Origin: Macrostomum hystrix
Lineage: Eukaryota > Animalia > Platyhelminthes
Direction: 5' to 3'
DNA length: 64,000 nucleotides
NCBI GenBank assembly: GCA_950097015.1
Contig: CATNEN010000034.1
Coordinates: 5,394,001 to 5,458,000 of the forward strand
A program made the position numbers and the translations under genes. The notes below the pieces were generated by a model. It did no database searches. It was not told the DNA's origin and saw only the letters and a program-made list of their open reading frames with translations. Numbering within the stretch: position 1 is the stretch's first letter; each line of letters opens with the position of its first letter. Of the stretch, positions 841-33,074 are shown piece after piece.

Positions 841-873
841 AATTCGTTGGAAACGTGAATGTGCAGCACTTAC

Positions 874-3800
874 CCACACTATAGGTGAGAATTCCCTGGT
901 TAATCAGGCTGCAGGTGTAAGTTCCCAGCTGCAGGTAAGTCACGATGCAATAGCCAGTCAAAGTGTCGGCCGTGTTAAAGAACGCATCGTCATCGTACAC
1001 TGCCAAATTAACCTGCTGTCCAGGATAGTACATGGACTCCAGGACTTCGTTCCATGTAGGATTGAGATGGTCTGAGGCAAAGTTTTATATAAAATTGAAA
1101 GTCAGTTGTCAAGGTGCGGTTGAATTATAATCGACATTCTAATAAACCGTTATCGAAAACTTTACTTAACTCTGATCGGATGTCTGCTCTACTCAACTCT
1201 AATCGATTGTCTACTCAACTCGAATTGATTGCCAACTCAACTCAAATACATTGATTTTATACTTCACAATAATCAAAAACCTACTCAACTCTGATCGATT
1301 GTCTACTCAACTCTAATCGATAACCTACTCAACTCTGATCGGTAACATAATCAACTCTGATCGGTAACCTACTCAACTCTGATCGCCAACCTATTCAACT
1401 CTGATCGATTGTCTACTCAACTCTAATCGATAACCTACTCAACTCTGATCGGTAACCTACTCAACTCTGATCGATAGCCTACTCATCTCTGATCGCCAAC
1501 CTATTCAACTCTGATCGATTGTCTACTCAACTCTGATCGGTAACCTACTCAACTCTGATCGATAACCTACTCAACTCTGATCGGTAACATAATCAACTCT
1601 GATCGGTAACCTACTCATCTCTGATCGACAACCAAGTTAGTTCTGATCGACAACCTACTCAACTCTGATCGATAGCCTACTCAACTCTGATCGACAACCT
1701 ACTCAACTCTGATCGACAACCTACTCATCTCTGATCGATAAACAAGTTAGCTCTGATCGACAACCAAGTTAGCTCTGATCGACAACCTACTCATCTCTGA
1801 TCGACAACCCAGTCAACTCTGATCGACAACCTACTCAACTCTGATCGACAACCTACTCAATTCACGAACCACTAAATTATATTTATTGAAACTTAAAAAA
1901 GCGTGTCGGTTCACTCACTCCAAATGGTGGACGTGTTTGCGCCGCAATTCTGATCGAACGTGGAGGCGACAACCAGTGGGTCAGACCGATCAAAATCGCC
2001 GTCACTGTCCATTAGGTTGCTGGCTGAATAAATGTTGATTCTGAAGGTGCCTGCGAGAAAGTATCAAGGGGCATCAATAACCCAAGATACTTAAAAAGTG
2101 CAACTTTCGATTAACTGGAATGACTTTTTGAGTGAGTTTTTAGTCATTGTGAATGTTGCAATCACCTCCAGCGGCTGATGAAACTGAGTACACCAGAGTC
2201 CCTTGGGTGCTGAGGGCGCACGAGTGACTGCCAACAGATAGTGTCTCTATGCAGTAGCCGAGTCGATCTCTTCGATAATAGGTGCCGTCGTCATCGAAAA
2301 CTTCAAATCGAACTGATCCACTGGGATAATTTACTGGCAGGACATAATTCCAGGTGGGATTTAGCGAGTCTGCGGAGTGAGTGTGCGCGGTAGACTGGGA
2401 ATTATCCCTTCAGAGGATTGCGAATATCCCTTCAAAAGATTTGGAATTATCCCTTCAGAGGATTGGGAATATTCACTTAAAAGGATTGGGAATTATCCCT
2501 TCAGAAGATTGCGAATAACCCCCTCAGAAGAGTAGAAATAATTTCTTCAGAAGATTAAGAAAAGCCCCTATAGAAGCTTGAAAATAATACCTTTAGAAGA
2601 TAGGGAATAATCCCTTTAGAGGATTGAGAATGATCGCAAAATAAGATTGGAATTCGTCCCTCCGGAAGATTTGAAATAATTTCTACAGGTAGAACAAGAA
2701 ATCCCATTGATAGAATAGAAATAATTCACATGTACGAGATTCGTAGAATGTATAAAGTACATTTAAGCGCAAATATCCCATAGCAAATCAGGCAATAAGC
2801 ATGCTCCTCACTATCAATCTTCGGCGTCTGGAGGATAAGCGGCTGGGTGCAAGCGAGAACCGGAGTGGCTCGCATAATGGGATCCGTAGCCTGATTCTCT
2901 CCGGAATCGAGATTGGGCAAACCGGATGCCGACACAGCTCTGATGGTGTAGTAGCTGAGGTAACTGTCTGAAAGCAAACAGGTTGGTGCAGTATGACTTG
3001 GACCACAAGATGCCGAGTTACTTGTGAAAGATGTAACTTTTAACTCGTAGCTAGTACCAAGGAGCGAGGCTTTATAAAATAGCTAGAGTAGGGAGCAGGT
3101 AAGATTAACTAGTAACTAGTAACTAGCAACTCGTAGGGAGTAGCAAGTAACTAGTAAGGAGTAGCAAGTAACTAGTAGGGAGTAGCAAGTAACTAGTAGG
3201 GAGTAGCAAGTAACTAGTAGGGAGTAGCAAGTAACTAGTAGGGAGTAGCTAGTAACTAGTAGGGAGTAGCAAGTAACTAGTAGGGAGTAGCTAGTAAGTA
3301 GTAGGGAGTAGCAAGTAACTAGTAGGGAGTAGCAAGTAACTAGTAGGGAGTAGCAAGTAACTAGTAGGGAGTAGCAAGTAACTAGTAGGGAGTAGCTAGT
3401 AAGTAGTAGGGAGTAGCAAGTAACTAGTAGGGAGTAGCAAGTAACTAGTAGGGAGTAGCAAGTAACTAGTAGGGAGTAGCAAGTAACGAGTAGCACTCAC
3501 TCTGCTGATAGAAGGTGATGAAGCCCTTGCTGTAGCTGGACCTGATCAGCTGGCACTGGCTGTAGCCGTTGAAGTAGACGCTGACCGTGCACTCTCCAAT
3601 CAGCTGATCGGAGCTGCCCGAGTCATAGTCGTAGGCGGTCAGCGTGAAGCTGCCACTGTCCCAGCTAGGGCTAGTCGGACAATTGTAGTTCCAGATGGCG
3701 ATTCTTGAACCGCACTTGCCTGAAATTGATCTTGCACTTTTAGCCTGCTGAAATTTTATTTAGATCCCGCCTTAGGATAAAAGTCTACCAGCGGCTGCAG

Positions 3801-4522
3801 CATAGTGGTACGAGTGTCCCACTTACGACTTTAAGGTCGTGAGTTTGATTCGGTGGACAGGTGCAGTAAATAATAATTATTCTTGTTTTTGATAGAGTTG
3901 ATTGAGTTGGAATTTCATTGAGTTGGGATTTCACTGAGTTGGGATTTCATTGTGTTGGGATTTCATTGAGTTGGGATTTCATTGAGTTGGGATTTCATTG
4001 AGTTGGGATTTCATTGAGTTGGGATTTCATTGAGTTGGGATTTCATTGAGTTGGGATTTCATTGAGTTGGGATTTCATTGAGTTGGGATTTCATTGAGTT
4101 GGGATATCATCGAGTTGGGATTTCATTGAGTTGGGATTTCATTGAGTTGGGATTTCATTGAGTTGGGATTTCATTGAGTTGGGATTTCATTGAGTTGGGA
4201 TTTCATTGAGTTGGGATTTCATCGAGTTGGGATTTCATTGAGTTGGGATTTCATTGAGTTGGAATTTCATTGTGTTGGGATTTCATTGAGTTGGGATTTC
4301 ATTGAGTTGGGATTTCATTGAGTTGGGATTTCACTCACTGGCTATGGTAGGAGTTCTGCACAGAACCTGGCCATCCTTCGTCACCGTGACATATGGATCA
4401 GACGATGTTCCATAATCTTGGCAGTCCAGCTGAACACCGTTCACAATAACCAAGGCAGCCTCAGAGGTGACAATTGACAGGTAGAACATAGCAAGAAGCG
4501 CTAGCTGATTGTTGGAAAACAT
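874..4522 (-). CDS. Secreted triple C2-domain protein, paralog A (3' end unresolved)
   Basis: Exons 4522-4339, 3719-3501, 2967-2812, 2369-2166, 2050-1919, 1071-874. All introns are GT-AG and phase 1, and the frame stays open. Signal peptide [23 protein letters not shown]2 motifs SSDPYV / YDYD..SDQLIG, LD..TDP / NPTWN / FDDD..DRLG, MDSD..SDPL / NPTWN / YDDD..DTLTG. Confidence 0.85.
1170..1860. repeat. ~22-bp minisatellite (ACTCAACTCTGATCGAYAACCT)n in intron 5 of gene A
   Basis: Tandem units with variants, read directly. Confidence 0.9.
2395..2720. repeat. Degenerate ~23-bp minisatellite (GGAATTATCCCTTCAGAGGATTG)n in intron 3 of gene A
   Basis: Tandem units decaying left to right. Confidence 0.8.
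3105..3495. repeat. 21-bp minisatellite (AGTAACTAGTAGGGAGTAGCA)n in intron 2 of gene A
   Basis: About 18 units abutting the splice donor at 3500; source of ORF 3116-3496. Confidence 0.95.
3793..3862 (+). mobile_element. Degenerate tRNA-like head of SINE family 2
   Basis: GCAGCATAGTGGTACGAGTGTCCCACTTACGACTTTAAGGTCGTGAGTTTGATTCGG resembles the head at 46222; no intact acceptor stem. Confidence 0.55.
3898..4335. repeat. 16-bp minisatellite (TTGAGTTGGGATTTCA)n in intron 1 of gene A
   Basis: About 27 units ending at the donor site at 4337-4338. Confidence 0.95.
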
Positions 4523-5139
4523 TCCTCAGATTCAGTGGCTAGGCTAATTCAATGCAGGAAAACTGTGACTCTAAAGTACTTGTAGATTTTTGACAAGCCT
4601 TCTTTAAGCAGGCGCCCTGTAGCTTTGAAGATGTCAATCATATGGACCTAATTAATATTCACAGTTTTGGGCTCTACTGTCTGTCCTGTTCAGTGCCGCT
4701 GATTGGCCAGGAATCTAATGAACTGTCTATGTTGTTTCTCATCTGGAATGCAACTCATCTAAATGAAAACATTTTCCTAGAAACATAGATTAGCTCTTAA
4801 AAATTCTGAATTGTTTTTTGTTTTGCCTTCACTAACAAAGACTATGAATTAATAAATTTTCTACAGTCAGTCCAATACGAGTATTTGTCACAGCCATTGC
4901 TTACCACTGCCTTTGTCAATAGTGAAATTATTTTTTTACCATTTCCGAGTCAAAGTAACAGGCCCTGAATAATTAGTTAAAGCTTCTAAAAGGAAATCGT
5001 GTTCTCTAAAAATAAACTATCGATTCATTAAAAGGTTCAACGTTTTTAATAATAGGGCCGATTTTAGAGATACCTTGTCGAATAGGAAAAGCTAATGAGT
5101 GGATTTGAGGAGACTGGCTCGTAGGGCGGATCTGAAATA

Positions 5140-6755
5140 TTTGGGGGCGGATTGATAGAAACTGGGGGCAGATTGATAGAAACTGGAAGGCAGATTGATA
5201 GAAACTGAGGGGCTGATTGTAGAAACTGGAGGGCAGATTGATAGAAACTGTGGGGCGGATTGATAAAAAATGGAGGGCAGATTGATAGAAACTAGTGGCG
5301 GATTGATAGAAACTGGGGGGCGGATTGATAGAAACTGGAGGGCAGATTGATAGAAACTAGTGGCGGATTGATAGAAACTGGAGGGCTGATTGATAGAAAC
5401 TGGAGGCGGATTGATTGAAACTGGAGGGCTGATTGATAGAAACTGGAGGCGGATTGATTGAAACTGGGGGGCGGATTGATAGAAACTGGAGGGCTGATTG
5501 ATAGAAACTGGAGGGCAGATTGTAGAAACTGGAGGGCGGATTGATAGAAACTGGAGGGCAGATTGATAGAAACTGGGGGGCAGATTGATAGAAACTGGAG
5601 GGCAGATTGATAGAAACTGGAGGGCAGATTGATAGAAACTAGTGGCGGATTGATAGAAACTGGGGGGCGGATTGATAGAAACTGGAGGGCAGATTGATAG
5701 AAACTAGTGGCGGATTGATAGAAACTGGAGGGCTGATTGATAGAAACTGGAGGCGGATTGATTGAAACTGGGGGGCGGATTGATAGAAACTGGAGGGCAG
5801 ATTGATAGAAACTAGTGGCGGATTGATAGAAACTGGAGAGCGGATTGATAGAAACTGGGAGGCAGATTGATAGAAACTGGAGGGCAGATTGATAGAAACT
5901 GGAGGGCAGATTGATAGAACCTGGGGGCAGATTGATAGAACCTGGGGGCAGATTGATAGAAACTGGAGGGCTGATTGATAGAAACTGAGGGCTGATTGAT
6001 AGAAACTGGAGGGCAAATTGATAGAAACTGGAGGCGGATTGATAGAAACTGGAGGGCGGATTGATAGAAACTGGAGGGCGGATTGATAGAAACTGGAGGG
6101 CAGATTGATAGAAACTGGGGGCAGATTGATAATAATAATAATAGTAGCAGAAGGGCTGCGGGCAATGGCACATAATTTAGTGACACTAGACCCGCATCTA
6201 GCGAGGAGGCAATTCTGCCCATTTCGCTGACCCCTGAGCCACACGCACACAGATATTCTACGCAGGCATACGCTCACACAGGTGTGTACATCTGCCCTGA
6301 CTTTCTCATCGTCAGGCAGTGTACATTTCACTGTGCCTTGGAGGTTGGCCCACAAGGGCGTAAATTGCACGACAAGCCCCCAAGCCTTCTCTCCGCGGCT
6401 GCGCCCCAAATGAAATGTGGCCTCGCCGTGGAATCGAACTTAGGGACCTTGGTGCGAGAGGCAAACGCGTTAGACTGCTCTGCCACCGACCCCCTGGGGG
6501 GCAGATTGATAGAAACTGGAGGGCAGATTGATAGAAACTAGTGGCGGATTGATAGAAACTGCAGGGCAGATTGATAGAAACTGGAGGGCAGATTGATAGA
6601 AACTGGAGGGCAGATTGATAGAACCTGGGGGCAGATTGATAGAAACTAGTGGCGGATTGATAGAAACTGCAGGGCAGATTGATAGAAACTGGAGGGCAGA
6701 TTGATAGAAACTGGAGGGAAGATTGATAGAACCTGGGGGCAGATTGATAGATCTG
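5140..6755. repeat. 21-22-bp minisatellite (GATTGATAGAAACTGGAGGGCA)n, interrupted by a SINE
   Basis: Dozens of units; source of ORFs 5292-6173, 5639-6409 and 5812-6222. Confidence 0.95.
6132..6493 (-). mobile_element. SINE family 1, full length (~360 bp), (ATT)n tail
   Basis: Minus-strand head GGGGTCGGTGGCAGAGCAGTCTAACGCG (A box) and GTTCGATTCC (B box); body shared with 8 or more other copies; flanked by ~17-bp direct repeat CTGGGG(G)GCAGATTGATA. Confidence 0.9.
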
Positions 6756-6758
6756 CTA

Positions 6759-7856
6759 TCAATCTGATGGGCGGATTCGGTAGAGACTGAGTGGCTTATG
6801 TCTCACTAGGTCTGCAGAAATAAAAGAAACAAAACACAGAAGCAAACTTGATGATACTTTCTGTCTGATCAGTAACGAAAAAGAGTTTATTTTGAAAGCG
6901 AAAAATGGAACTTTGCATTTTTTCCAATATATTTAGAGAACAGAAAACCAGCACATAACTCCTGCATGTAATAAAGATAAATTTCTACTTACCAGCTACT
7001 ATACCGTCAAGATCACCAACTGCTTCAGGGAGGTGGAAGCTGAATATCTGTTAGACAAGACTCACTGATGAGCTGATAATCGAGGTAGCCTTTTATTCTG
7101 TCAGATCTAATCAGATCGCATCGGTTGGTGCCTTCCACGTAGGCGCTGACTGTGCACTGGCCTACCAGATCATCACTAGTACTGGAGTCATCGTCATATG
7201 CAGCCAGAGTGAATGTGCCCGAGTTCCACGTAGGACTGTTTGAGCAAGCGTAATTCCAAACTGCTTCAATCGACCCGCATTTGTCTGTGGGGTGGTTGGG
7301 AGTGGCAGAGCGTTTGCCTCGTTCGCCAACGACCCTGAGATAGCAATTTTCGCCATTGAGGGCCAACCTCCAAGACACAGTGAGAGTATACACTGCCTGA
7401 CGATGAGATAGTCAGGACAGATGTACACACCTGTGTGCGTGTGTGCTCAGATGTCAGCGGAATGGGCAGAATCGCCTTCTCGCTGGCTGCCAGTCTAGTG
7501 TCACCAAATGTCACCAAACTGTCAGAGGTAGTGTCTGTGAGTAATTGATCACTAAAAGTACTCGGCCAATAGTTCTTGATAAGTATACTATAGAATGCCT
7601 ACATCAAATGTGTTTTATTGTTTGACTTTATCGATTTCCGAGTGATTGCTATTAAACTATGAAACTTACTATCTAAACTTGGCGTTGAGCACAGCTGCTG
7701 ACCATCCTTGAGCACCTTGACGTACGGATCTATCCTGGAGTTTGAGTCCAGAGTACAATCCAATTGTGTGCCCTTGACAATGATCAGAGTGTCGGCTCGC
7801 ACAGTATGGACAGCTGCTGTCAACGCAGTTAAGAGAAATATTTCAAGGACAGGCAT
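6759..7856 (-). CDS. Secreted single C2-domain protein, paralog B (152 aa, truncated relative to paralogs)
   Basis: Exons 7856-7670, 7284-7066, 6811-6759 (459 nt, open frame). Signal peptide MPVLEIFLLTALTAAVHTVRA; LDSNSRIDPYV and YDDDSSTSDDLVGQC; stop after NLVRHKPLSLYRIRPSD. Confidence 0.8.
7289..7520 (+). mobile_element. SINE family 1, internally deleted, in intron 1 of gene B
   Basis: GAGTGGCAGAGCG head, then GAGGGCCAACCTCCAAG, CAGATGTACACACCTGTGTG and GTCACCAAATG body motifs. Confidence 0.85.
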
Positions 7857-8599: not shown

Positions 8600-8680
8600 T
8601 TGACAGTTTGGTGAGTGTGGCTGCCCCCGCCACCAGTCCATGGACTGAGCAACTGTACACAGCCTTTGGAAGCGACGCTC
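8600..8680 (+). mobile_element. SINE family 2 fragment
   Basis: GTGTGGC...CCAGTCCATGGACTGAGCAACTGTACACAGCCTT matches 46390-46440. Confidence 0.65.
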
Positions 8681-9521
8681 CTAAAAGAGTGCATTTAGAA
8701 AACGAAATGGGTTATTAAATCTAAAATCTAAAAATGAGAGGCATTGTCAACAAACCTACTCTTCGGCAGGTGTATCTCTGTGATCTGCAAATTAGCCATT
8801 AGCATCCACTGACTCGATGTACAGAGATTCCAAAAAAAATCCCCACCAGGTAGTGTGGTCACTGAAATACGTATCGACCCCATTTGATAGCCAACGGATC
8901 TGGTGCCTCTCCAAACTGCTTCAGAAATCACCACTCAAGATTACTGTCCAGCACAAAATCGAATGACTGTCTTTCCTACCCAAGACGTAGCGATCCGGTT
9001 TTTAGTTGTCAAGATACGTTCAAGAGTTATCGGGAGGTCAGGCCTGTACCCGGCTTTTCGTCGACTGCCTGCTAGCCAAAACTCTCTGTCCTGCTGAAAG
9101 TATTAACCACGATGGGCAAACAGAATGTCCGATTTTCGTGAAAGTCCACCGTTCATGTGGACTAACATTTTCCGCCCTTTACGGTGAACTAACTTTCAAA
9201 CCCGTCCGACGTCAGCATCGTCGATATACGAGATATTCAGCGGTTTTTGTCGAAGACACTGGTGGCTTGGTTGGATATTTTAGGAGATACAGAACAAATG
9301 CCCCCATGGTCTTTGTACTTTTAGCAAAAATGTCTGCAATCACAAGTTTTTTGTCTCTTGACGCAGCAGCGCCTTCAGAACCAGAACCCAAGGCATGCAT
9401 TAAAGTTTTGAGCTTAAGCGCGAAATGGTTTTAAGCGTTTAATGAATTCAGCGAAAATAATAACTCAGGAAAACATTATGCTAAAATCTGGCCTTTGAGC
9501 ACTTCATTGTCGGTAGTTTAT

Positions 9522-12500
9522 TTAAGAAGCCCACAGCAGAGAATGCAGTATAGTCGAATTTGACCGCAATGTCATCGTTTTTAGCATTTTCTTTATATAG
9601 CACCTACAGATAATTGCGCACTTAAATGAAGTTTGCATAAATACTTGTAATTTACGCATTGACTTACCAAAGAAAAAAACTAACCTTTGTTTGAATACTT
9701 GTGCTGCAATGTTGATAACTGTAAGGATATTATCGTCAATTGTATTGAGGGCCACTCACCCACTGTGTAGGTGAGGTTTCCCTGTCCCACCAGGCTGCAG
9801 GTGAATGTGCCCAGCTGCAGTCGCGGCAGCAGGCAGTAGCCAATCAGTGCGTCTGTTGTGTTGTATTGAATGTCATCGTCGTAGACGGAGAGATTCACCG
9901 GCTGGCCTGGGTAGAACTGAGAATCCAACGCTTCACTCCACACTGGATTCTGCTCGTCTGCATGGTAAGTTTGAGTATGGCTTCACTATACCGCACAGAG
10001 GCAAGTGCTCATAGAGAAGAGGCTTGGTAACTCGAACTAGAAATTTCTAAAAGAACCCCGTGCGTATTTTTTATTGCTCACACATGTCTAGAAACTCCAA
10101 GGGACCAAACATACCAAAGACAATTGAGTGAAAGGCTTTTGTCTATGGTCGACACATGCTTGAGAGGAACAGCAATTGAGTGAAAGGCTTTTGTCTATGG
10201 TCGACACATGCTTGAGAGGAACAACGGTTGAGTGAAAGGCTTTTGTCTATGGTCGACACATGCTTGAGAGGAACAGCAATTGAGTGAAAGGCTTTTGTCT
10301 ATGGTCGACAGATGCTTGAGAGGAACAACGGTTGAGTGAAAGGCTAAGATCCTATATTAATGACCGCTATGACAGTGTAATAATATCCGATTAAATGTAC
10401 CCGTTTGCTGCTTATTATAATTTTCAACTCTAAGATTAGTACTAGTCGAATAACTAACATAATTGGCTTTTTGCGTTTAGAAGATACCAGAGCATAATCA
10501 ACTCACTCAGTATGAAGCTTGAATTCCCGCCACAATTCCGGTCATAAGCGGCGGCCTGCACCAGCGGATTCGGAGGATAATCTCCAATGTAGGCCAGGCC
10601 GACCGCTGATTTTACTGTGATTCTGAAAGTGCCTGAACGCCAAAATATAATATATTCGATTCAATTTTATTTCCTCTTCAGTTGTTTCTAGTGCTGTGTC
10701 GACATGTTAGCATCACGCTCAAAATATTCAACATTAATGAAAGGTTACGGAAAGGTAATCTTTATCTTAGGCTAGGCTATTTAGACTGTGAATTATGCGA
10801 AGGATCAGTATAAATTTGTCTACTTGTGATTTCTACATGTACTTTATAAAGTCACTATTGGCTTGGTGTGGATCCGTTCGTATCAAGAAAATAAATTATT
10901 GAGTCGCATGTTAACAATCCAGGTAGAAAAAGATTTTTATTTCTACCCTTAGTAATATTTCAAACCGACTTACCGACAAACATATCGGCAGTGACTGAGT
11001 AGATCAAGGTTCCCCATACGCTCAGGGCGCACTGCTGATTAGTACCAGCAACCAGGTAGCTCACACAGTAGCCCAGCCTGAGTCTATTGAACGGGTTTCC
11101 ATAGCGGTGCAATATTTCGAATCTAACATAGCCAGCAGGATAAGCAACTGGCAGATTATAGTTCCAGTTCGGATTGTTTGTGCCTGGAAGAATTGGCACC
11201 GAGCTTGTATTCTTGCAAATTCTAAGATAATGATATTTCTCAAACATGAGGCACGCTGCCACTACTTTAAGTAGCGTCGCGAGGAAAAAGGAATTCTTCA
11301 CCTGTGGCAATCGGCGTCTCCTGAATCAGAGGCTCCGAGCAAGAAGGCACTGGTGCGGCCTGGACGTACGGATCCGAGGTCGTGGGACTCAGTCCCGGAT
11401 CGAGGTTCGGCAAGCCAGCCGCTGAGACAACCGTGATGATGTAGTGATTCAGAGAGCTGTCTGTTAAAGGGAGCGTTAGACTATTTCTATCTGCTATTTT
11501 CTCTTACCTTTAAAATAACACATTCGTACGAGCGTAGATATAGAAAAGTAGAAAAATGTGCGTTTTTGATCGAAATTGGGTGTCAATTTAAGGCTCTAGA
11601 ATGGAATAGTCAATCCTTGAACCAAACCAACTAAAGTCAGTAGCTGGTCGATCCACGTCGACTAGACTAGAAACGTCGAGGCATCTCACCCCATTCCTTC
11701 TCATGGTTGCCAGGGGGATAAATGGGATAAAATGGGAATTTCATGTCAACTTAAGGCTCTAGAATGGCGCCCGAGGTCAATCCTCGAACCAAACCGACTG
11801 AAATCTGTAGTAGCTGGTCGATACTATGAGAATGGACTGGGGCAGAGGTGTCTCGGCGTTTCTATTCGACTGGATCGACCAGCTACTGACTTCAGTTGCT
11901 TTGGTTCGAGGAGTTGACATCCCAATTGGTGCCCGGCCTTCAAAAACTCTCGAAGAAGTGTCTACGTTTCGCGTTGACAATCAGGGACCAAAACCAACTC
12001 ACTCTGCATATAGTAGGTGATGTAGCCCCTACCGCTGCTGATGCCAGCCTTCAGCAGCTGGCATTGGCCGTACCCGTTCTGGTAGCTGCTCACGGTACAT
12101 TCGCCAATGAGCTGGTCGGCATTGTTGGTGTTCCAATCGTACGCTGAAAGAGTAAAATTGCCTGACTCCCAGCCAGGGCTGTTGGGACAGTAGTAATTCC
12201 AAATAGCTGGCTGAACGCTGCACTTGCCTGCAAAGAGTGCCAAAACCGATTGCCCTTTACTGATCTCATTTCTGCTTAGTAATAAACAGTATTAAAAAGC
12301 CATGAGTCCTAGCAGGCAGGTTTGACTAACCGCGGATGAAAGGCGTTGTACACAGGACTTGGCCAGCCTGAGTCAAGTTCACATAGGGCTCGGATGAAGA
12401 GCCGCTGCTCGAGTCTAGGCAGGTCAGTTGAATTCCGTTGATAATTGCTAGGGCGCTGTGATTCGCAGCTTCTGAGATGGCAGAGAGGTGCGCCAAGGTG

Positions 12501-12550
12501 ATAAGCCCGATAAGCTTTAGCATTACAGGTTGGCTGGTTGTTGGGAACAT
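9522..12550 (-). CDS. Secreted triple C2-domain protein, paralog C (~417 aa)
   Basis: Exons 12550-12331, 12227-12003, 11460-11302, 11183-10974, 10632-10507, 9957-9760, plus tentative 9718-9685 and 9603-9522 (total 1254 nt, open frame). Hydrophobic leader MLKLIGLITLAHLSAISEA. Exon sizes and phases match the paralogs. Confidence 0.82.
10121..10345. repeat. 52-bp tandem repeat x4.3 with alternating A/B variants, intron 5 of gene C
   Basis: Unit starts at 10124, 10176, 10228, 10280, 10332; ends alternate GAACAGCAA / GAACAACGG. Confidence 0.9.
11578..11923. mobile_element. Foldback MITE (GGG...CCC termini, AATT flanks) in intron 2 of gene C
   Basis: 11609-11704 is an imperfect inverted repeat of 11826-11918; 11745-11822 is a direct copy of 11581-11652; AATT at 11574-11577 and 11924-11927. 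Confidence 0.7.
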
Positions 12551-13613: not shown

Positions 13614-13958
13614 GGGGTGAGTGGCAGAGCGGTTAACGCGTCTACCTCTCGCACCAAGGTCTCGAATCCGAGTCGATGCCTCATTAATTTGGGACGCAGC
13701 CACAAAGAGAAGGCTTGGGGGCTTGTCGTGCGATACGGATACGCCATTGAGCAACAACCTCAAGGCACAGAAAGAGTGCACACTGCCTGACGAGGAGAAA
13801 GTCAGGGCAGATGTACGCGCCTATGTGACTGTGTGCCTGCGTACGGTATCTGTGTGCTTGTGTGCTCAGTAGTCTCAGCAGAATTGCCTCCTCGCTGGAT
13901 GCGGGTCTATTGTAACCAAATGATGTGCCAGCGCCCACAGCCCTCCTGCAATTGTTAT
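13614..13958 (+). mobile_element. SINE family 1
   Basis: GGGGTGAGTGGCAGAGCGGTTAACGCG head; family body; ends CAGCCCTCCTGCA plus AT-rich tail. Confidence 0.9.
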
Positions 13959-14051
13959 ACGTTATATAATAGATTCATTAATCTTCTTACGCAATAAACA
14001 ATGCTTCAATTCGATTAGGCCATAGACTAAAGTCCGGCAGAAGATTTGCAC

Positions 14052-18214: not shown

Positions 18215-18798
18215 GTTTCTATGAGAACAGACTGTGCAGTAGGTACCAAATAGAAGTTGAAAACGAGGTCCACTTCTCATTTAAGTGTAGGTGGAATAGG
18301 TATGGCACTGCCCGTTCAAATTTTTTAACTCGTGTTTTTCGTGTTTTTAACTCCAGAAGATAAATCAAACTACTTAACGGCACAAGATGACAGGGAAACC
18401 ACTGAAGGCCTGGCAAAGTATATTATAGAGTACATCTGTATATAATCAGAGTACAGCTGCTCTGAGGCTGATGAAACCATGCAAAAACGCGAATTGCCTA
18501 AATGTTAAAAGAATCTGCTAATTTCTCTCCTTTTGGCATAATTGTTATTGTTATTGTTATTATAGCGATGGTGAGCTCAGTCTGACGTTTGTTTCAATTG
18601 CTTTTGTGTCCGAGAAATCTCACGGACCTAAGCTTGCAGAATAGCAGTTAGCAACATTGGTTACAACTGCTCTTTCTCTTTCAATGATTAAAGCTCACCT
18701 TGTCATCATAAACTAAGAGGATTATTTTTAACAAAAAAAGCTTTCATAGCAACACGCAATTATTAAGAAACGACGCTAAAGTTCCTCATGCCAAAGTG

Positions 18799-22800: not shown

Positions 22801-23153
22801 AAGCTGCCTGAATTCCAGGCTGGGCTAATCGGACAGTTGTAATTCCAGAGCGCCTCGATTTGTCGACACTTATCTGGGAAAAATCACCGGAAGTTGCAAT
22901 CTGGGATTGGGTTGGCTGTCGAAATGATTATCTGCGTTGACTTACTAGTTTTGTGAGGTGTTTCGCACAACGCAAAGCCATCCTTCATCACCTTAACGTA
23001 GGGATCAGACGATGTGCCCGAGTTGTCCAAGCAGTCCAATTGGATTCCATTGATAATAACCAGAGCTGCATTAGCCACGGTTAAAAAAATGGGTGAGAAG
23101 TGCAGCAGAAACATGGGCGCCAAAACCATATACATTTTATCGCTGGTGTACAC
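19881..23153 (-). CDS. Secreted triple C2-domain protein, paralog E1 (~390 aa; last exon tentative)
   Basis: Exons 23153-22946, 22873-22649, 22326-22171, 21067-20858, 20408-20283, 20171-19974, plus tentative 19930-19881. Hydrophobic leader MVLAPMFLLHFSPIFLTVANA; [13 protein letters not shown] and YDYDYSGTDKLIG. Confidence 0.82.
20480..20675 (-). mobile_element. SINE family 2, diverged (duplicate at 30403-30598)
   Basis: Reverse complement contains CCTTGAGCAAGACACAT...ATCACCCAGCTGTAAAATCTATACCAGCG and CCAGTCCTCGGACT. Confidence 0.7.
21281..21617 (+). mobile_element. SINE family 1 with 16-bp TSD
   Basis: Flanks TTTAACCTTGATCAGC (21265-21280) and TTTAACCTTGACCAGC (21618-21633); A/B-box head. 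Confidence 0.92.
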
Positions 23154-23564
23154 ATGTGATCCCGGTTCCTCAACTCAGCCTATGAATTATTGGAAATGCA
23201 CATATAATAATTTTAACGATAGAAATTCAAAACATTACAGCATTTACAGTTAGTTCAGTAGTTGCTCAAGAATGCTGAAAATGATTTTCGAGCGTATGAG
23301 TCCATATCCCTCCTTATTGTTCCTGCACTTCTTCCTATCTGGCATTCCATATGGCACAATAGCTTTTTAAAAGCTTTAAAAGGCTATACTTGCCATTAAA
23401 ATTTTAAAGTTCACATTAGACCCACATGCATATTCGTAACTCAGGCTCAAGTCAGAATGGTGATAGGAAGCAGCTGAAACGCAAGCATTAGCAAAACGTA
23501 TGCTCAATAAGGACAGCTCAATAAGTCATAAATCGGCTCAGTGAGGGAGCAATTTGCCTGGCAA

Positions 23565-23715
23565 CGAGAAATTCATGACAGATGCAAATGCACTCGAACG
23601 GATACATGTGCGTGTGTGTAACAGTGCGCTCAATGCATGATTCAGCGAATTGTATAGAATTGACTCCTCGCCGGGTGTGGGTCGACCACATCACCATCAC
23701 CAAACGATGCGCCAG
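23565..23715 (+). mobile_element. Old, degraded 3' half of SINE family 1 (duplicate at 33485-33635)
   Basis: GAGAAATTCATGACAGATG, TGTGCGTGTGTG, GAATTGACTCCTCGCCGG and CACCAAACGATGCGCC resemble the family body. Confidence 0.6.
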
Positions 23716-23749
23716 AGACCAGAGTAACTGCTAAAATAATTTTTTTATG

Positions 23750-24100
23750 AAGCGTTGTGCGCGATACCAAAAAAGTAACGGCGATGGCGGTAACGATCGT
23801 TACTGAACATTTGGTAACGGAAAAGTAAAGTAATGAAGAAGTAAAAAAATAGTCACTATATCGTTACTTTTAATCGGTACTTTCCGTTTTTTTTACTTTT
23901 TTTTCTATAAATCTACTATTTTTACGTAAGCATACCATAAATACATGTAGCTTTGTTTATCGGTCATTGCTCATATCATGTGTTGTAATCTCCAATCTAC
24001 AATTGCTAATAATAGAGTCAAAATTGAATATTATTTACTAGAAATTTTTTTTATTCCTTACCAAATTGGTAACTAGTAACGTGTAACGCGCCCAACACTG
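23750..24100. mobile_element. hAT-type MITE (351 bp)
   Basis: TIRs AAGCGTTGTGCGCGATAC / GTAACGCGCCCAACACTG (14/18); 8-bp TSD TTTTTATG / TTATTATG (7/8); internal GTAAC repeats. Confidence 0.75.
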
Positions 24101-27100
24101 TTATTATGATAGCGGTAATAGGCATAAGATTCTATATTAGTCTAGGAATTACTGACGAGATAGAGACGATTTAGCAATATGTTTTATTTAAAAAATAGTT
24201 TTTTTGTATCCATTTGCCTGGGAAACAGAAATTTGTATTTGATGCTTCTCAACAGATTCTATTTCGTTTATAAACGTATCAAAACATTAGATATAAAACT
24301 ACAATGTTACTTTCAATCATTCCGCTTACCCTTAGATTGATTTGTAGGCTTGTGAGATGTACGAGTGTGCTCCTAAATGCGCCAATATGCCAGCTGTTGA
24401 TGAATTGAATTAAACGCACCTCTGCACTCGTGGCTGCTATATAGAGTCTATATAGGACTTCAACTGTTTGATGTTTGAATAATTCACCAGTCCATATATA
24501 ATTTTAAGGTGGCGAGCACATGTCTAGTCATGCCTGCCTGCCTTGCTGCATCTACACTTGTTAAAGAGATTTGCGCTTATAGATTGTTTAAGCAACTTGA
24601 TGAAGGTGCCAGCTGAATTCCATGTGTCAAGCCCGTACTGAAAAGTGGTTTGAATTAAAAAAGAGTGTTGCCATAATGGCCTGGGTTGCTGTTAGGCGCA
24701 AAGCTACCATGCAGCATCAGCCAGAGTGTTCCCGTCGTTGACAGACGTTTTACGCAAACAAAGTGCAAGAAAACACTGGACTTCGTAGGCGAGAAAAAAA
24801 ATTTATGGCAGGTTTTGGGAAAGTTTCAGCTCCCGACTGAGATATCCTCACTTCCTGTACTCCTAATCAATGTCAGCTAGGAAGCTAGTCCCATGGCCGC
24901 TTCAAAATTCTTCCTGTGGGGATGAACATGGACCAATACTTTTTTTCGCTTAGGCTTATGATTCCGACTCTCAGTCAGTCCCAACTGTTGTCCAAATAAT
25001 GACTTTGGGAAGGTATACAAAAACCAGATTTAGCGTGATTATGAAGATCCTAGAAATGTGATCAATACTTATATTATATAAACGTATATAATTGTGTTTA
25101 CGTTCTTAGTGTAAAGATCGACGCAGTTTCTGGTATTAGCATAAACATCGAAACGTCGTCAGATATATGTAGTGAGAATTTATTCGAAACTCATATGATT
25201 AGATCTTAACACAGATACTCGTACTAGACTACGCTAGATATGTCACTCGCGAAAAATGTGTTGGGCTACTCTTTTTTCAGTAGCAGAATTCGCGCTTTTG
25301 TTTTTTGCAATTTCGAAAATCTCAATTGCTCGTTATTATAATTAAAGCGTGCAGTGTGTATATGTCTGAGCAACCTGCATGATGATAAGCTTTCAAAAAG
25401 TAGTCACTCAATTAATTTCTTTGGCACTGTCTCAAAGCCGGACAGTTACAGGCGCGGCGCTGTCCAAAAATTTTATAGATGGATCTGGAAAGTCGAAGCT
25501 TCGGTTTCGGTTTCGACGTCCAAGACTGGCGACATGCCGATCGATGACAATTCTATGAGGTAATAATAAAAGGAAAAGGAAAAGGAAAAATTGAAATCTC
25601 ATTACTTTTTACTGGGATCGACTTTAGACGTAACAAAAAAATACACTCCTCACTCAGCCTTAGTGGTGAAACGTGCTGAACACTACTTCCGATATCCATT
25701 TTATTCTGAATTTAATTAAAATGTTACTGTTCCTCATTATATTTAAGCGTTTACAGATTAAGAGGGCTTCTCGTAAAATAAAAAACTCCTTCTGTGAAAG
25801 ATATAATGAACATCTAGGTAAAAGTTTATTATAGTTTTGTTCTTTCTACGACACTCTTATTTTAAATAAACAAGATCATGTCATATTTAACGAGTCCATG
25901 CTGCTACGAGTATTATGTACACTAACTAACCACAAAAGTAATTCAAATTTTAGTCATTATTTTACTATACATGATTCTAAATGGATATTAGCATTACACA
26001 GTTGTTAAAGTTTATTATGTTTATGATTACTTTCTTTTGCAAAAATAGCACTAAAATAACTAAATCAGATTCTTGACAGCTAATCAGATTCACTGGATTC
26101 TTATGTGAATATAATGCAATGCAATTTTATCAAGGCAAATCTCCACTTTAGATGTTATTAATAAAATGTTGCCTTTTTGAAGTTTAGGTTTAGGCCTAGT
26201 GCAAAAAATTTACTATATCAATCATGTGCTAATACAAATACAAATACAAATAATACACATGTTTTGGGACACTGGAAATTTTTTGTTTGCCTTGTGTATT
26301 GATAAATTATTTTAAATTTAGACATCCTTGTCTAATTATCTTCAACCCTATGTACAAAAATGCTAAGCTCTGGGTTTGATTCTTTTCTTTTGGTACAATG
26401 GCACCATATTTAACTAATTGTTGCTTTTGTTATGTAGTAGCTGATTGCCCATTGTTACACATAAAGTATAGTAAGTATTTTCCTAGATCTTATATTATAT
26501 GTTGTGACTTTTTTTAATTACATTATATACCATAAAATTATGCATTACATATATGAAATTTGAAATTTGACAAAAGATCTAAGAAACTACTTATAATACC
26601 CTAATGTGTAATAGTGGGCAATGATTAATGTGTTATGGTGGCATGTTACAAATAGATGATTGATTTGTACATTTTATAGGCTTAATAAATAAAAAAGTGA
26701 TGCAACTTTTCATAGTCATGAAAAATATTTGAATGTTGGATTTAACTAGATTCAGATTTTATGTAACTAAAACTAGATTTAATGTATAAATTTTAGGCAT
26801 GTCACTAACTTATAAATTTTTACCTAACTAATATTTTATAGACAATGTTTTGTGACTCTATAAGCTTATAAGTATTTAAGTTCTCTTGCATATGGGTTTT
26901 CTTATTTAATCATATTATATTGTATTTTTCACACAAAGCACCAACTAGTATATGAATTATAAACCTTGTTCAGTTTGAGTGATACACTGTTCTGTTGGTC
27001 ATATGTTAGGCCTACCCTAGTGGTCATAGATTTGAATCTAGGAAATCTTAGCTATCTACACCATATGACACAATATTGATTAGTTATTGTTAAAAGGTCT

Positions 27101-27584
27101 TATTTAGCATAATTCTATTATGCTAATAGAATTCACGTGTGTGACATTGTTAAGACAGACGTACATAATTCTATTAGCATAAGGGATAAAGAAATCACAA
27201 AATGTTTATAAAGGAATAAAGCTAGCAAGTAATATTAGTAGCATCTTACAAATGTAAAATATGTAAAATATATATATATTGTTAATTGAAAAATTATTAT
27301 TTATAGTTGTTTGGCCTATCTATCAATTGAAAGGTTGATATAAAATACATTTTGTAAATAAATAAAATAATTCAACATAATATGCAAAAATGTGATTTTT
27401 TTAGAAATAAGCTAGTTATGTAAGTGTTTGTCATGATTTTTATGCCTATAAGTTATGTAATTTTGGGTAAATTTTCCACCTATTGTATGATCTCAAAATG
27501 TAATATTCTATTGCCACACCTAATTTCATAATTGATAACAACCAAATTGCAGCAATTGTCCAGTATCATGCATCTTGCATTAAA

Positions 27585-29345
27585 ATGAAGAGAAAAGGCC
27601 AAAAATCTGACCAACCAGCTGCTAAGAAGCGAGTTAAGCTAAGAAGCTTAAACCATCTAATTACTTGCAAGCTGTGCAAGGGTTATTTAATTGATGCAGC
27701 AACTGTTACAGAGTGCTTGCACACATGTGAGTCAGAGCTGTCATCATTTTTTACTCACTGATTTTATTATCTGTATTTAAATAGTGCTGATAACTATTTC
27801 TTTATACCTAAATTCATTGACTTTGCAGTCTGCAAATCCTGTATCGTAAAACACCTGGAAACTAAGAATACATGCCCAGAGTGTGGCATTTTAATTCATC
27901 ACAGTCACCCACTGCACTACATCAGGTAAATGGATGAGTTACATGTTGTGTTTTTATATGTTTAGCGACCTTGTTAACGATAGAATAACTAGATGGGTTT
28001 TTGTTTGACCCATTGACCATAAACTATGAATTTCGATTATTAGAGGACCCGTATGACATAGACTATTGTTTCTTGGAATATCAGTGGACCATAGACTATG
28101 CAATATTAAAGGACCATAGACTATGCAATATTAAAGGACCATAGACTATGCAATATTAAAGGACCAGTATACTGCAGACTGATGGGAAATTCAATTGTTT
28201 AATTATTGGACAATTTAATTAAGAGCAAAAGCCGAATTACCATTGCACACATCGTCCTCTCCCACACCACTGACAGCCTGGACCGCACCCTCCAAGATGT
28301 GGTCTACAAGCTCGTACCGAATCTTCTTCAACGAGAGCGCGAACGGGAAGCTAAGTTCTATCGTAGGCGCGGCCTGGAACCGCCCAACAGGGAGGAGTCG
28401 GCCTCTGTGGCGCGCCATCTTGCCCAGACTTTGATTGCTTCTTCTGATTGCGGTCCTTCAACCTCAGCGGCATCGTCAGCTAATTTTAATCGTGGAAATC
28501 ACCATAGCAACAACGGAGACGCCAACAATGCTGACGAGGATTTCGGGCGTGGAATACAGCGACACGAAGTCAAGCAGGAAAAAGATTCGGCTAATGATGG
28601 TCATCGAGGAGATGAACAGGTGAGCTTTTTCAGTGGAGCATGACCTACTGAATGACTAGTTAATAGCGCATGACCCACTGAATGGCTACGTGATGAAACA
28701 TAACCCACTGAATGACTAGTTGATGGGGCATGACCCACTGAACGGCTACTTGATGAAACATGACCCACTGAATGACTAGTTGATGGGGCATGACCCACTG
28801 AATGACTTGTTGATGGGGCATGACCCACTGAATGAGTAGTTGGTAGAACATGACCCACTGAATGAGTAGTTGGTAGAACATGACCCACTGAATGAGTAGT
28901 TGGTAGAACATGACCCACTGAATGAGTAGTTGGTAGAACATGACCCACTGAATGAGTAGTTGGTAGAACATGACCCACTGAATAACTAGTTTATGTAACA
29001 TGACCCACTGAATGACTAGTTTATGTAACATGACCCACTGAATGACTAGTTTATGTAACATGACCCACTGAATGACTAGTTTATGTAACATGACCCACTG
29101 AATGACTAGTTTATGTAACATGACCCACTGAATTACTAGTACACAGTGTTCTATCAACTCTTGTCCCTCCCCAGGTGAGTCTGAGGCTAGTCACGGCTGA
29201 ACCGGAGCTCAAACAAATTGATCGTATGTACATCCGCCTGTCCGCTCTGGCCACCGTCACGCACGTGAAGAAGTACATTGCCATGCAAGTATTCGAAGAC
29301 GCTAATCGTCATTGCAGTTCTGCTGCTCTCGGAATTTTTAATTAG
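27585..29345 (+). CDS. PCGF3: Polycomb group RING finger protein 3-like, copy 1, C-terminally truncated (250 aa)
   Basis: Exons 27585-27726, 27829-27925, 28277-28619, 29175-29345. RING [42 protein letters not shown]. Last exon cut by the duplication junction after FEDANR, reading through to HCSSAALGIFN-stop. Confidence 0.85.
28086..28165. repeat. 25-bp unit x3 (x1 in copy 2 at 38006)
   Basis: GGACCATAGACTATGCAATATTAAA; accounts for the 50-bp offset change between copies. Confidence 0.9.
28638..29135. repeat. 30-bp minisatellite (CATGACCCACTGAATGACTAGTT...)n in PCGF intron 3, copy 1
   Basis: Tandem units with variant blocks. Confidence 0.95.
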
Positions 29346-29803
29346 CCTGGCCCTGACCTGGCCGACTGGTAATGATCTGCTGAACTGTTTTTACAGAAAA
29401 TGGGCTTCTTGTCAAATTTCTACAAATGTAGAATTTTTTTTGTTTAGAGCTTAGAAGTAATTTGTATCGCAAACTGAGCAGCAGGGAGACTCAGTACTCA
29501 ATTCCTACTAATTTTCAGCGAACTGTGGCGCAAAGCGTGCTGGCAACAGTATTGAACCTAAAAGATGCAAAAGACCAAGGCGAAGAACACTGGCTTCTCA
29601 AACTCGTTGATTCACACTTATTCGGTATATTGATTTAGTTTGCATTATCTTGAAATTTGCTTTTTTGCACTAAATCGAGTCTTTGTAGTAAATGGGTCAT
29701 TATGAAAAAAAAACATTACGCGCGCGTCATCGAAAACACATACTTGCAATACATGGCAAGGCGTAATATAAAACGGAACTTACCTGACTACTAACCAGAT
29801 CTT

Positions 29804-32800
29804 TCAAGAAAAATGGTGGCTCAGAGACGGACAGAGAAGGAGAGCGTATCTTCCTGTCTTTCTAAGCATGAGCACAAGAGGTTAAACTTTGCTCACCAAC
29901 AATGTAGGTGAGGTTGCCCTGATTCACGAGGCTGCAGGTGAAGTTGCCCAGCTGCAGGATTGTCACCAGACAATAGCCAGCCGGTGTGTCTGGCGTGTTC
30001 ATGATCGTGTCATCGTCGTAGACTGACAGATTCACCTGCTGTCCGAGCTGAAATCTGGCATCCAATAGTTGGTTCCAGGTGGGATTTAGTGTGTCTGAAA
30101 CACGAGGATAGGTGTGGTTCACGTGGTCCGACAAGTATCTATGAGAGCCAATTGTACAAATCACGTGACTTTAGGCTGCTCGAGTCGCAGAGTAAGTACA
30201 CTTACTTAGGAGGGTATTGGTATTGGCTCCACAGTTTGGATCGTAGACTGCTACCACAACCAGAGGGTTGGGTTTGCTGCTGCCAATGAATGCCAAATTA
30301 ATGGCAAACTGTACCAGAATTTTGTAAGTACCTGTCGGTGGAATAATGCAGACATCAGGCTGTAACGCGTTACCTCTATGGATAGATGCATTGATGAATT
30401 ATACCTATCTCTGTGGGGCTACACATACAGCCAGTGACACAGCCGGAGTTTTTATGAAGGCTTTTTAGTCCGAGGACTGGCCAGGCCGCCGCACCCACGA
30501 AAAGTTATACATCAACTAACGCTGGTATAGATTTTACAGCTGGGTGATCTGAACAACTAAACAATTATGTGTCTTGCTCAAGGACAGGAATTTCTCAGAC
30601 TAATAATCTGAAGCACGCAACAAAGATCTTCTGGTCTGTCTTTCTATCAAGAAAGAAAATACACACGAGCGTAAACTACGAGTATGTGGAAACATTTTGT
30701 CGAGACAGCATAAGTTTTAAATTTGACGGAAACTATGTACAAAAATACGAATCCCGAACCCAAATCCCACCTGGTCTCACCGGAGGTGTCAGACGAGATT
30801 GTGAAAGCCAGAAAGCCCCACATGCTAAGCGCGCAAGTGTGAACACCTGCCGTCAGGCTCTTGACACAATAGCCTAACCGAACCCTGTTGTAGATGCCTC
30901 CATTATTGTGAAACACTTCGAGGCGCACGAATGCGGAGCTGTTGGTATAGCTGATAGGCAGATTGTAGTTCCAGACTGGATCACTCGTGTCTGTAATGCA
31001 GAACGAGACTTTTAGCCAACTACTGAGGGAAGGTTCAACAACGATTAAGGAGTATGGAAAAATTTTTAAATGTTGGATCAATGCAGCGATCTGGCCGATT
31101 TCCCAGTCTCTTTTTCTCTTTCTCTTTCATTTTTGTGTTGTACCCGTAGCGTTATGCTCTCCGGTCGTGACAGGCTTGATTCACATTTAACCTTGATCAG
31201 CGGGTGGCTGAGTGGCAGAGCGCTTAACGCGTTTGCCTCTCGCACTAAGGTCATTGAGCTCGATTCCGCGGTGAGGCCACATTCATTTGGGGCGCAGCCG
31301 CGGAGAGAAGGCTTGTGGCTTGTCGTGCAATTTACGCCCTTAAGGGGCAACCTCATAGACACAGTGGAAGTGTACACTGCCTGACAATAAGAAAGTCAGG
31401 GCAGATGTACACACCCCAGTGTGAGTGTGTGCCTGCGTACGGTATCTGTACGCATGTGTGCTCAGGAGTTAGTGGAATGGGCAGAACGGCCTCCTCGCTG
31501 GCTGTGGGTCTACTGTCACCAAATGATTTGATAATAATTTTAACCTTGACCAGCAAGAAAATTTTTCTCACCCTCCTCCGCATGTCATTGGCTGACCCGG
31601 CCTGACAGTGGTTTTGTTCACCCTCCACCGCGGGCCATTGGCTCAGCGGGCCGGTCAGCTTAGTAGCCGGATTTTCTCTGCCCCTTCTAGCCAGCCCAGG
31701 TTGTACAACCCTCCAGCTTTGCATTTCTGCTCCCGTGTGCTATCTCGAGTGTGTGGGCTGCAGAGTCTAGAGCGCTGTTGCTCGTTTCTTAAATCTCTTT
31801 CAAAAAAAGAAATAAGCATTGTGCAGGACATCGCGATGGGGATCAAAAAAGTTCCTTGGTTCCTTTGACGTTTGAATATTATTGCCACACCGCTTCAGGG
31901 GTCGAACTGAATGGGTTTTACTCGTTGGGCTAAAATGAATCCAGAATTGGTTGACTTCTCGCCAACCATCCTAGCACTCCTAAAGTCTGGAATTGCCGTA
32001 TAAACTACTGTCTATACGGCAATTCTAAACACTAAAAGTTCACATTTTGCATATAAGACAGTATATATTATTAATTATATGGACAGCTTACTTGTGACTG
32101 TAGGAGTCTCTTGGGCCAAAGTTTGAGCACAGGCTGGCACCGGGCTGGCTTGCGCATACGGATCCGTGCCATGAATCTCACCCGGGTCAAGATTTGGTAG
32201 GCCACTGGCTGACACAATCGTTATGGTGTAGTATGCTAGCGGTGCATCTGATAAAGAGAGGACGCTTCTTGATTTAATTGATTCACAAAGGAGATTACAA
32301 TTTCAATCGCGTTTCGATTCACTCCAGCAATTCACTGAACTTTTCGCAAGATTAAAACTTGCAAAAAGTTACGTCGGTTTTAGTATGTTGGACTAGCTAT
32401 TTCAAACCCCAGAGGGTCCAATGCGAGATCTCTTTTTAGATCTCTGATGAAGGCAGATTGAGTTTCATTAACTCAAGCAGAACAGTTTTGCTGAATTATT
32501 ATTTTATGGTCCCAACTTCTTTATTGCTAAATTTCAGTAATCGGATAAAATATTGGACTTTTTACTCACTTTCCATATAAAATGTGATAAAACCGTGGCT
32601 ATTGCTGCTGCCGGACTTCATCAGCTGGCACTGTATGTACCCGATCAGGTTACCATTGACTGTGCACTCGCCAATGAGCTTGTCAGTGCCAGAATAATCA
32701 TAGTCGTAGGTGTTGATATTGAAGCTGCCTGAATTCCAGGCTGGGTTAATCGGACAGTTGTAATTCCAGAGCGCCTCGATTTGTCGACACTTATCTGGGA

Positions 32801-33074
32801 AAAATCACCGGAAGTTGCAATCTGGGATTGGGTTGGCTGTCGAAATGATTATCTGCGTTGACTTACTAGTTTTGTGAGGTGTTTCGCACAACGCAAAGCC
32901 ATCCTTCATCACCTTAACGTAGGGATCAGACGATGTGCCCGAGTTGTCCAAGCAGTCCAATTGGATTCCATTGATAATAACCAGAGCTGCATTAGCCACG
33001 GTTAAAAAAATGGGTGAGAAGTGCAGCAGAAACATGGGCGCCAAAACCATATACATTTTATCGCTGGTGTACAC
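29804..33074 (-). CDS. Secreted triple C2-domain protein, paralog E2 (duplicate of E1)
   Basis: Exons 33074-32867, 32794-32570, 32247-32092, 30990-30781, 30331-30206, 30094-29897, plus tentative 29853-29804. Noticed differences from E1: ISP to INP and one synonymous change in exon 2. Confidence 0.82.
31202..31538 (+). mobile_element. SINE family 1 (duplicate of 21281-21617)
   Basis: Identical to copy 1 by eye. Confidence 0.92.

Follow-up and report, generated by a model that had tools for sequence, protein, structure and literature searches.

We here describe a cluster of paralogous genes of the flatworm Macrostomum hystrix, located in a stretch of 64,000 nucleotides that was analysed as a whole and is referred to as the window (contig CATNEN010000034.1 of assembly GCA_950097015.1, positions 5,394,001 to 5,458,000 of the forward strand). 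Six genes, A to F, lie on the minus strand at 839-33056, in agreement with the span 874-33074 given in an initial annotation made from the DNA letters, and an all-against-all comparison of stop-free frames places all repeated coding pieces on this strand. The predicted products consist of an N-terminal leader followed by three C2 domains, or by a single one in the case of B. We propose that they probably represent a lineage-restricted tandem family of soluble secreted proteins, built from three disulfide-stabilised C2 domains of the perforin type without an effector domain, and capable of multivalent Ca2+-dependent membrane binding.

The gene models were assembled by setting exon borders from the ends of conserved similarity together with splice signals, and family and profile searches were run exon by exon. 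Genes A, C, D, E and F are each predicted to comprise six exons separated by five introns at homologous positions, all in phase 1. The donors are of the GTGAGT/GTAAGT type, the acceptors are pyrimidine-rich with CAG, every splice site in these five genes is canonical, and the summed coding sequences (CDS) of 1128, 1218, 1128, 1140 and 1140 nucleotides (nt), respectively, are all divisible by three. Exon 1 encodes the leader and the first half of domain 1, exon 2 the second half of this domain, exons 3 and 4 domain 2, and exons 5 and 6 domain 3, i.e. each domain is cut by a phase-1 intron, and the stop codon follows 1-24 codons past a conserved V-G-[E/K] end of domain 3. A single giant multi-C2 gene was considered and ruled out on the predicted models, as each unit has its own ATG, leader and in-frame stop.

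Gene A (839-4522, minus strand; 375 amino acids, aa) follows this plan, with an ATG, five phase-1 GT..AG introns, Pfam C2 matches on exon halves and a TAA stop (exons 4339-4522, 3501-3719, 2812-2967, 2166-2369, 1919-2050 and 839-1071). Gene C (9680-12550, minus strand; exons 12331-12550, 12003-12227, 11302-11460, 10974-11183, 10507-10632 and 9680-9957) has the longest predicted product, 405 aa. The product of gene D (15822-18214, minus strand; exons 18016-18214, 17704-17928, 17435-17590, 16825-17034, 16115-16243 and 15822-16030) has 375 aa when read from the ATG at 18214, with an in-frame upstream ATG at 18280 as alternative start. Genes E (19939-23135, minus strand; exons 22946-23135, 22649-22873, 22171-22326, 20858-21067, 20283-20408 and 19939-20171) and F (29862-33056, minus strand; exons 32867-33056, 32570-32794, 32092-32247, 30781-30990, 30206-30331 and 29862-30094) each encode 379 aa. 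Gene B (7025-7856, minus strand) retains exons 1 and 2 only (7670-7856 and 7025-7284), encoding a predicted signal peptide and one C2 domain of the domain-1 type, 148 aa if read to the stop, and an intact GTGAGT donor is found at the homologous end of exon 2, after 7066. Searching for exons 3-6 of B with tblastn against 4526-7027, i.e. the ~2.5 kilobases (kb) downstream, yielded nothing significant; a 22-nt satellite (5143-6751) occupies much of this region.

The near-identity of F to E extends far beyond the genes. Two tandem units of ~10 kb, 19383-29308 and 29306-39274, share 97.9% identity over 10,022 columns and hold one gene, an AT-rich spacer and a 30-nt satellite (28634-29140 and 38510-39106) each. 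The spacers (26001-28000 and 36001-38000; 28.5% GC) contain no open frame and give no family match. Of the 1140 exon nucleotides of E and F, 2 are mismatched, one of them visible as a Ser/Asn change in exon 2, and the 2055 intron nucleotides match throughout; in the upstream flanking part of the units we count 7 substitutions in 5,414 aligned bases, and the difference between the units otherwise consists mostly of indels, which also occur within the 30-nt satellites at the unit ends. Such a pair could represent an assembly artefact, in which a single locus or a pair of alleles was placed twice in a row. The window would then hold five genes, and the copies indeed differ at only ~0.1% of aligned bases once indels, including those in satellite tracts, are set aside. 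However, the duplication is located inside a single long contig, its junction at 29306-29308 is clean, and satellite length is unequal between the two units, which makes an artefact quite unlikely. We conclude that E and F most probably result from a very recent duplication; being near-identical, they reduce the distinct sequences of the window to five.

Further family members lie beyond the window, in the 10-kb stretch just upstream (contig positions 5384001-5394000, numbered separately from its own first letter). Here, a seventh, divergent paralog, G, follows the six-exon plan on the plus strand at 272-4841 (exons 272-472, 1785-2027, 2172-2306, 3320-3523, 4427-4561 and 4647-4841), convergent with A. 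A 16-nt satellite, which forms the cluster boundary next to the 3' end of A (window positions 1-839) and continues to 8753-10000 of the upstream stretch, separates the two genes. Between G and this satellite, at 5442-5941 on the minus strand, lies a frameshifted, B-like copy of a domain-1 second-half exon, spread over two frames and with no exon 1 close by, which reads as a decayed family member. In intron 3 of G, a 48-nt tandem repeat is open in frame for 319 codons. A mucin-like linker in G was rejected, as this 319-aa frame is mostly intronic repeat and the real exon 3 lies at 2172-2306; a word search with region 222-312 of the frame gave no match.

Genes A, C, D and E are, judged from codon alignments, old copies relative to one another. 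Synonymous differences among them are saturated (proportion of synonymous differences, pS, 0.67-0.78; of non-synonymous differences, pN, 0.28-0.31), and the ratio of non-synonymous to synonymous rates (dN/dS), summed across per-exon alignments, amounts to ~0.10-0.21, which shows them to be maintained genes under purifying selection. Gene B is more distant from the other paralogs (pN 0.34-0.43). A tree built from the second half-domains unites all copies of domain 1 in a single clade (support 0.985) and, for A, C, D and E, groups domains 2 and 3 by position; hence the three-domain plan is older than the gene duplications.

These data bear on the initial annotation in several respects. The proposed shared exon plan holds in A, C, D, E and F through the five homologous phase-1 introns, and in B for exons 1 and 2. 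Six same-strand paralogs are indeed present, but with E and F near-identical only five are distinct, and the family extends upstream to G on the opposite strand and to the relic. Expansion is backed by the E/F duplication and the paralog comparisons, in line with birth and death of genes in the cluster. The supposed divergence, in turn, applies in that the paralogs are old with saturated synonymous sites; it is not fast and adaptive, as far as tested, given dN/dS of ~0.1-0.2. As to family size, exon-peptide searches of the whole 220-megabase genome confine the family to this cluster.

Domain type and predicted secretion

The only recurring Pfam family is C2 (PF00168), matched by 10 of 16 second halves and 4 of 15 first halves. 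The matches are complementary, with first-half exons covering positions 1-42 and second-half exons positions 34-90 of PF00168, and score 13-23 bits against a cut-off of 22, the best being exon 4 of A (23.0 bits, E 9.8e-5). No exon matches MACPF (PF01823), and the Pfam searches of the exon peptides detected no catalytic or pore-forming domain. An assignment to ApeC (apextrin C-terminal domain) was rejected, since none of 31 exon peptides matched the Pfam ApeC profile even at E up to 10.

Profile comparisons specify the type of C2 domain. A profile of the 16 second half-domains finds turbot SmC2P1 (3w56/3w57) as the best match in the PDB, at E 4.9e-5 and with the whole profile covered, and the residue alignment places both conserved cysteines in register; the C2 domain of perforin (4y1s) is likewise matched over the full length. 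For the corresponding first-half profile, the matches fall on the N-terminal strands of C2 domains in synaptotagmins. When 1.84 billion representative proteins are searched with the second-half profile, 106 matches are obtained at E up to 0.001. Most of these are large cytosolic multi-C2 proteins, in which the best stretch spans only the generic first two thirds, before the cysteine-bearing C-terminal third. The remaining full-length single-stretch matches are mostly secreted fish proteins of 122-144 aa, named 'perforin-1-like' or 'C2 domain-containing'. In agreement with this, hhalign relates the second halves to the fish c2PRF1-like set with 98.8% probability (E 7.4e-17, score 89), versus 96.7% (E 3.9e-10, score 55) for a cytosolic C2 set compiled from the top matches, i.e. 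the domains are nearer to the fish proteins.

True relatives among the 1.84 billion representatives are limited to two fragments, both from Macrostomum lignano, and a full-length triple-C2 counterpart is not found among them. The first fragment, P0004 (66 aa, 85 bits), is 67% identical to exon 6 of A, and the second, P0083 (126 aa; UniProt A0A1I8G945), is 57% identical to domain 2 of G; the best matches of both in the M. hystrix genome (69% and 62%) lie solely within the cluster. P0083 carries the automatic name 'PLAT domain-containing', and its whole domain scores 20.8 bits against PF00168. A PLAT/LH2 assignment was rejected, since Pfam gives C2 only and no PLAT domain is present among the 50 best Foldseek matches. 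These matches were obtained with an AlphaFold (AF2) model of P0083, computed from an alignment of the exon pieces of the window and fish proteins (pLDDT 67.8, pTM 0.62): the 50 top PDB matches consist exclusively of C2 domains, SmC2P1 ranking first and perforin third. Profiles and model together identify the predicted domains as C2 of the perforin type.

The leaders share one layout. All seven paralogs start with a methionine and a short polar stretch. The hydrophobic core that comes next is 11-14 residues long, with a mean Kyte-Doolittle score of 2.0-2.45 in an 11-residue span, and a small-x-small motif (SEA, VRA, ASA or ANA) then abuts the first strand of domain 1. In gene A, the predicted signal peptide covers the first 22 codons (4457-4522, minus strand), ends in S-E-A and has a Kyte-Doolittle mean of 2.39 over 11 residues. 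The proteins of the cluster are acidic, lack a C-terminal hydrophobic anchor and contain 12 conserved cysteines each, six in domain 1 and three in each of domains 2 and 3. Moreover, every module is flanked by phase-1 introns, an arrangement typical of extracellular modular proteins. Based on these features the products are very probably secreted tandem-C2 proteins.

Alternatively, the hydrophobic stretch may be a signal anchor or an artefact of a wrongly chosen ATG, with the proteins acting inside the cell like ordinary multi-C2 proteins. The signal peptides were called by rule of thumb only, as a hydrophobic core followed by a small-x-small site, and gene D offers the upstream ATG as another start. 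Nevertheless, conservation of the leader layout in all seven paralogs, the 12 conserved cysteines with the phase-1 modular introns, and the secreted nature of the nearest relatives render an intracellular role most improbable.

The initial annotation had likewise described a leader with three C2 domains (one in B) and nothing else, in particular no catalytic or pore-forming part, and had assumed an extracellular character. The exon models with Pfam C2 on the halves, PF00168 as the sole recurring family and the cysteine and intron patterns all agree with that description. The checks it had suggested point the same way, with complementary PF00168 matches on the exon halves, exclusively C2 folds among the 50 Foldseek matches of the M. 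lignano relative, and true relatives among the representative proteins only in M. lignano. Its statement that no named family could be recognised is valid only in part: it applies to the triple-C2 proteins as a whole, whereas their domains are of the perforin type, and teleost proteins consisting solely of a secreted C2 domain of this type, c2PRF1 and SmC2P1, have been described.

Calcium ligands and candidate functions

In perforin, the Ca2+ ions through which the C2 domain docks to membranes are bound by D429, D435, D483, D485 and D491, with contributions from aromatic loop residues (PMC10400287), and the ligand positions of the flatworm domains were read against these five aspartates. In domain 1, an acidic residue occupies each of the five positions in A, B, D and E; in C, two of the positions are taken by Glu and Asn, and G has lost all ligands. 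Paralogs A, C, D and E have an aromatic residue (Tyr or Trp) between the two loop-3 aspartates of this domain, where B has Asp. Domain 2 keeps the ligands in A, while the loop-3 acids are lost in C, D and E. Domain 3 has them all in A, only those of loop 3 in C and E, and none in D. Consequently, gene A retains the loop-1 and loop-3 aspartates in all three domains, and gene D has ligands solely in domain 1.

We propose that the proteins operate as follows. Following secretion into a Ca2+-rich fluid, the aspartate pocket of domain 1 would load Ca2+, and the loaded domain would dock on anionic phospholipid surfaces, like the C2 domains of perforin and SmC2P1; such Ca2+-dependent membrane binding through domain 1 is, judged from its ligands, reasonably likely. 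The product of A would be trivalent, with domains 2 and 3 adding Ca2+-dependent sites, whereas in C, D and E domains 2 and 3, having lost loop acids, may serve as Ca2+-independent or protein-binding modules. The proteins would then coat, bridge or agglutinate membranes, as opsonins, agglutinins or adaptors, rather than damage them. This role as coat or cross-linker, suggested by multivalency combined with the lack of a pore-forming or catalytic part, is put forward tentatively.

Several observations weigh against this interpretation. The exon joins of the predicted genes were made from the DNA letters alone, the signal peptides were judged by the core-and-motif rule, and the half-domains, scored singly since introns split them, mostly fall under the 22-bit Pfam cut-off. 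The fold model is that of the relative P0083 and not of a protein of the window, with moderate confidence and TM-scores of 0.4-0.55, and P0083 is without seven residues present in G, probably owing to a gene-model error. Furthermore, ligands are missing in domain 2 of C, D and E, in domain 3 of D and in domain 1 of G, and lipid binding may therefore not be the common function of the family. The microbes, apoptotic cells, mucus and gametes named in the initial annotation are conjectural targets.

The loss of canonical lipid and Ca2+ ligands in several domains is also compatible with proteins that belong to some secreted material or to a reproductive fluid (secretions of adhesive or rhabdite type, eggshell or seminal fluid), in which the C2 domains would act as Ca2+-dependent cross-linkers of proteins or glycans and not as lipid binders. 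Lineage-specific, tandemly expanding, cysteine-rich families such as this one are typical of gland products. On the other hand, the coding exons are free of low-complexity or matrix-type repeats, the repeats being intronic, and a complete membrane-type Ca2+ site is kept in domain 1, hence we regard this as unlikely.

The kinship of the proteins to perforin-type C2 domains raises another possibility, namely that they partner with or regulate the MACPF pore-formers of the animal itself, marking or occupying membrane sites or anchoring factors at pores. An adaptor role has tentatively been proposed for fish c2PRF1 (PMC7574235), and the genome contains at least seven MACPF loci. However, these loci are located on other contigs (C38, C8 and C1) with none linked to the cluster, and exon-peptide searches of the genome found no C2 domain of this family adjoining them. 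A partnership with pore-formers is thus improbable, and membrane binding by the proteins themselves, through domain 1, is the function we favour.

Repeats and neighbouring sequence

The window is eukaryotic in character, with 36-59% GC and many minisatellites. Several of these fill introns of A and C, at 1278-1860 (22-nt repeat), 3128-3493 (21 nt), 3901-4333 (16 nt) and 10120-10345 (52 nt), and a further array with a 26-nt repeat lies at 40399-41366. Such an abundance of tandem repeats is unusual and may promote rearrangements of the locus. In addition, translated matches reveal a short dispersed repeat, probably a transposon fragment, at intergenic and intronic sites of the cluster and at the far end of the window (6176-6538, 7165-7598, 13687-13974, 21435-21818, 31356-31739, 47821-48057, 53886-54185 and 63659-63790).

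Beyond the cluster, 43837-47483 on the plus strand holds exons of a voltage-gated chloride channel (CLC, PF00654; E 8.5e-59 and 3.7e-24), preceded by an exon that matches DUF3432, and looks like an ordinary neighbour. Further on, at 50773-55759 on the plus strand and 55747-59537, a GC-rich stretch (51-59% GC) contains long open frames of 320, 508 and 449 aa with no Pfam match except for a weak TPR_2 hit on the 320-aa frame (27.3 bits, no single stretch passing). Behind these come two long tandem-repeat arrays with frames that are open on both strands for 500-549 codons, most likely repeat artefacts.

Comparison with known extracellular C2 systems

C2 domains are overwhelmingly cytosolic. To our knowledge, the extracellular ones are few, comprising those of perforin, the Notch ligands and fish c2PRF1. 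The cluster described here would add a whole protein family made of extracellular C2 modules alone, in an invertebrate amenable to RNA interference (RNAi). Its paralogs form a natural series, from Ca2+ sites in all three domains of A to domain 1 only in D, and offer a means of studying membrane choice by extracellular C2 domains. Annotation of the family is all but lacking, with only two fragments in public protein sets, one of them mislabelled as described above, and our literature search found no paper linking Macrostomum with such proteins.

The cluster also bears on the source of the C2 domain of perforin, a protein that, according to a proposal cited in PMC7574235, arose when an MPEG1-like gene fused to a C2 gene. 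Genes for free-standing secreted C2 domains of the perforin type would then exist outside vertebrates, and the flatworm family could be a lineage remaining from an ancient stock of extracellular C2 domains, of the kind proposed to have supplied that of perforin, or an independently invented, self-contained system for binding and cross-linking membranes that extracellular Ca2+ activates upon secretion. We offer this as speculation that is rather doubtful at present; if true, it would reveal an effector-less membrane-recognition arm of invertebrate defence or secretion biology.

The closest known counterparts are the teleost proteins c2PRF1, a secreted protein of one perforin-type C2 domain only (PMC7574235), and SmC2P1 (PDB 3W56/3W57), a secreted single perforin-like C2 protein according to work cited in PMC10400287. 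As in these, the signal peptide of the flatworm proteins is directly followed by a perforin-type C2 domain, with no domain of another kind. The second half shares the pattern 'G-x-C ... C-x-L ... G-x-L-x-Y' with both cysteines aligned and the Ca2+ aspartates conserved, the teleost proteins are the best PDB and best full-length database matches, and tandem gene birth and death is common to both groups. In contrast to the single C2 domain of ~130 aa in c2PRF1 and SmC2P1, the flatworm proteins have three (375-405 aa, B excepted), with one extra invariant cysteine in each domain and six cysteines in domain 1. Furthermore, c2PRF1 genes are said to derive from vertebrate PRF1 through partial duplication, whereas the cluster has a flatworm host, no linked MACPF gene and ~20% identity. 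Given the three domains, the host and the lack of a linked MACPF gene, we do not classify the cluster as a member of c2PRF1, even though it appears to work like one.

The C2 domain of perforin-1 (PDB 4Y1S, 3NSJ and 7PAG), which accomplishes extracellular Ca2+-dependent membrane docking, resembles the flatworm domains in sequence through corresponding aspartate positions and the aromatic residue that A, C, D and E carry in domain 1 between the aspartates of loop 3, but perforin-1 also contains the MACPF and EGF pore-forming domains that the flatworm proteins lack. Synaptotagmins, E-Syts, MCTPs and ferlins share the generic C2 motifs and a tandem arrangement able to bridge membranes, yet they are anchored by transmembrane or SMP domains, face the cytosol and have neither signal peptide nor the conserved cysteines. 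The N-terminal C2 domain of Jagged/Delta (MNNL) is extracellular, disulfide-containing and lipid-binding as well, and is found at Foldseek ranks 14-49 for the P0083 model; it differs in being a single domain at the tip of a transmembrane ligand with EGF repeats, and the fold match is weaker than for SmC2P1 or perforin. In conclusion, stand-alone extracellular C2 proteins are already known from teleosts, and what is new here is the triple-domain architecture, predicted from the gene models and seen so far only in Macrostomum, together with the extra cysteine pattern, the flatworm host and a tandem cluster with graded loss of Ca2+ sites.

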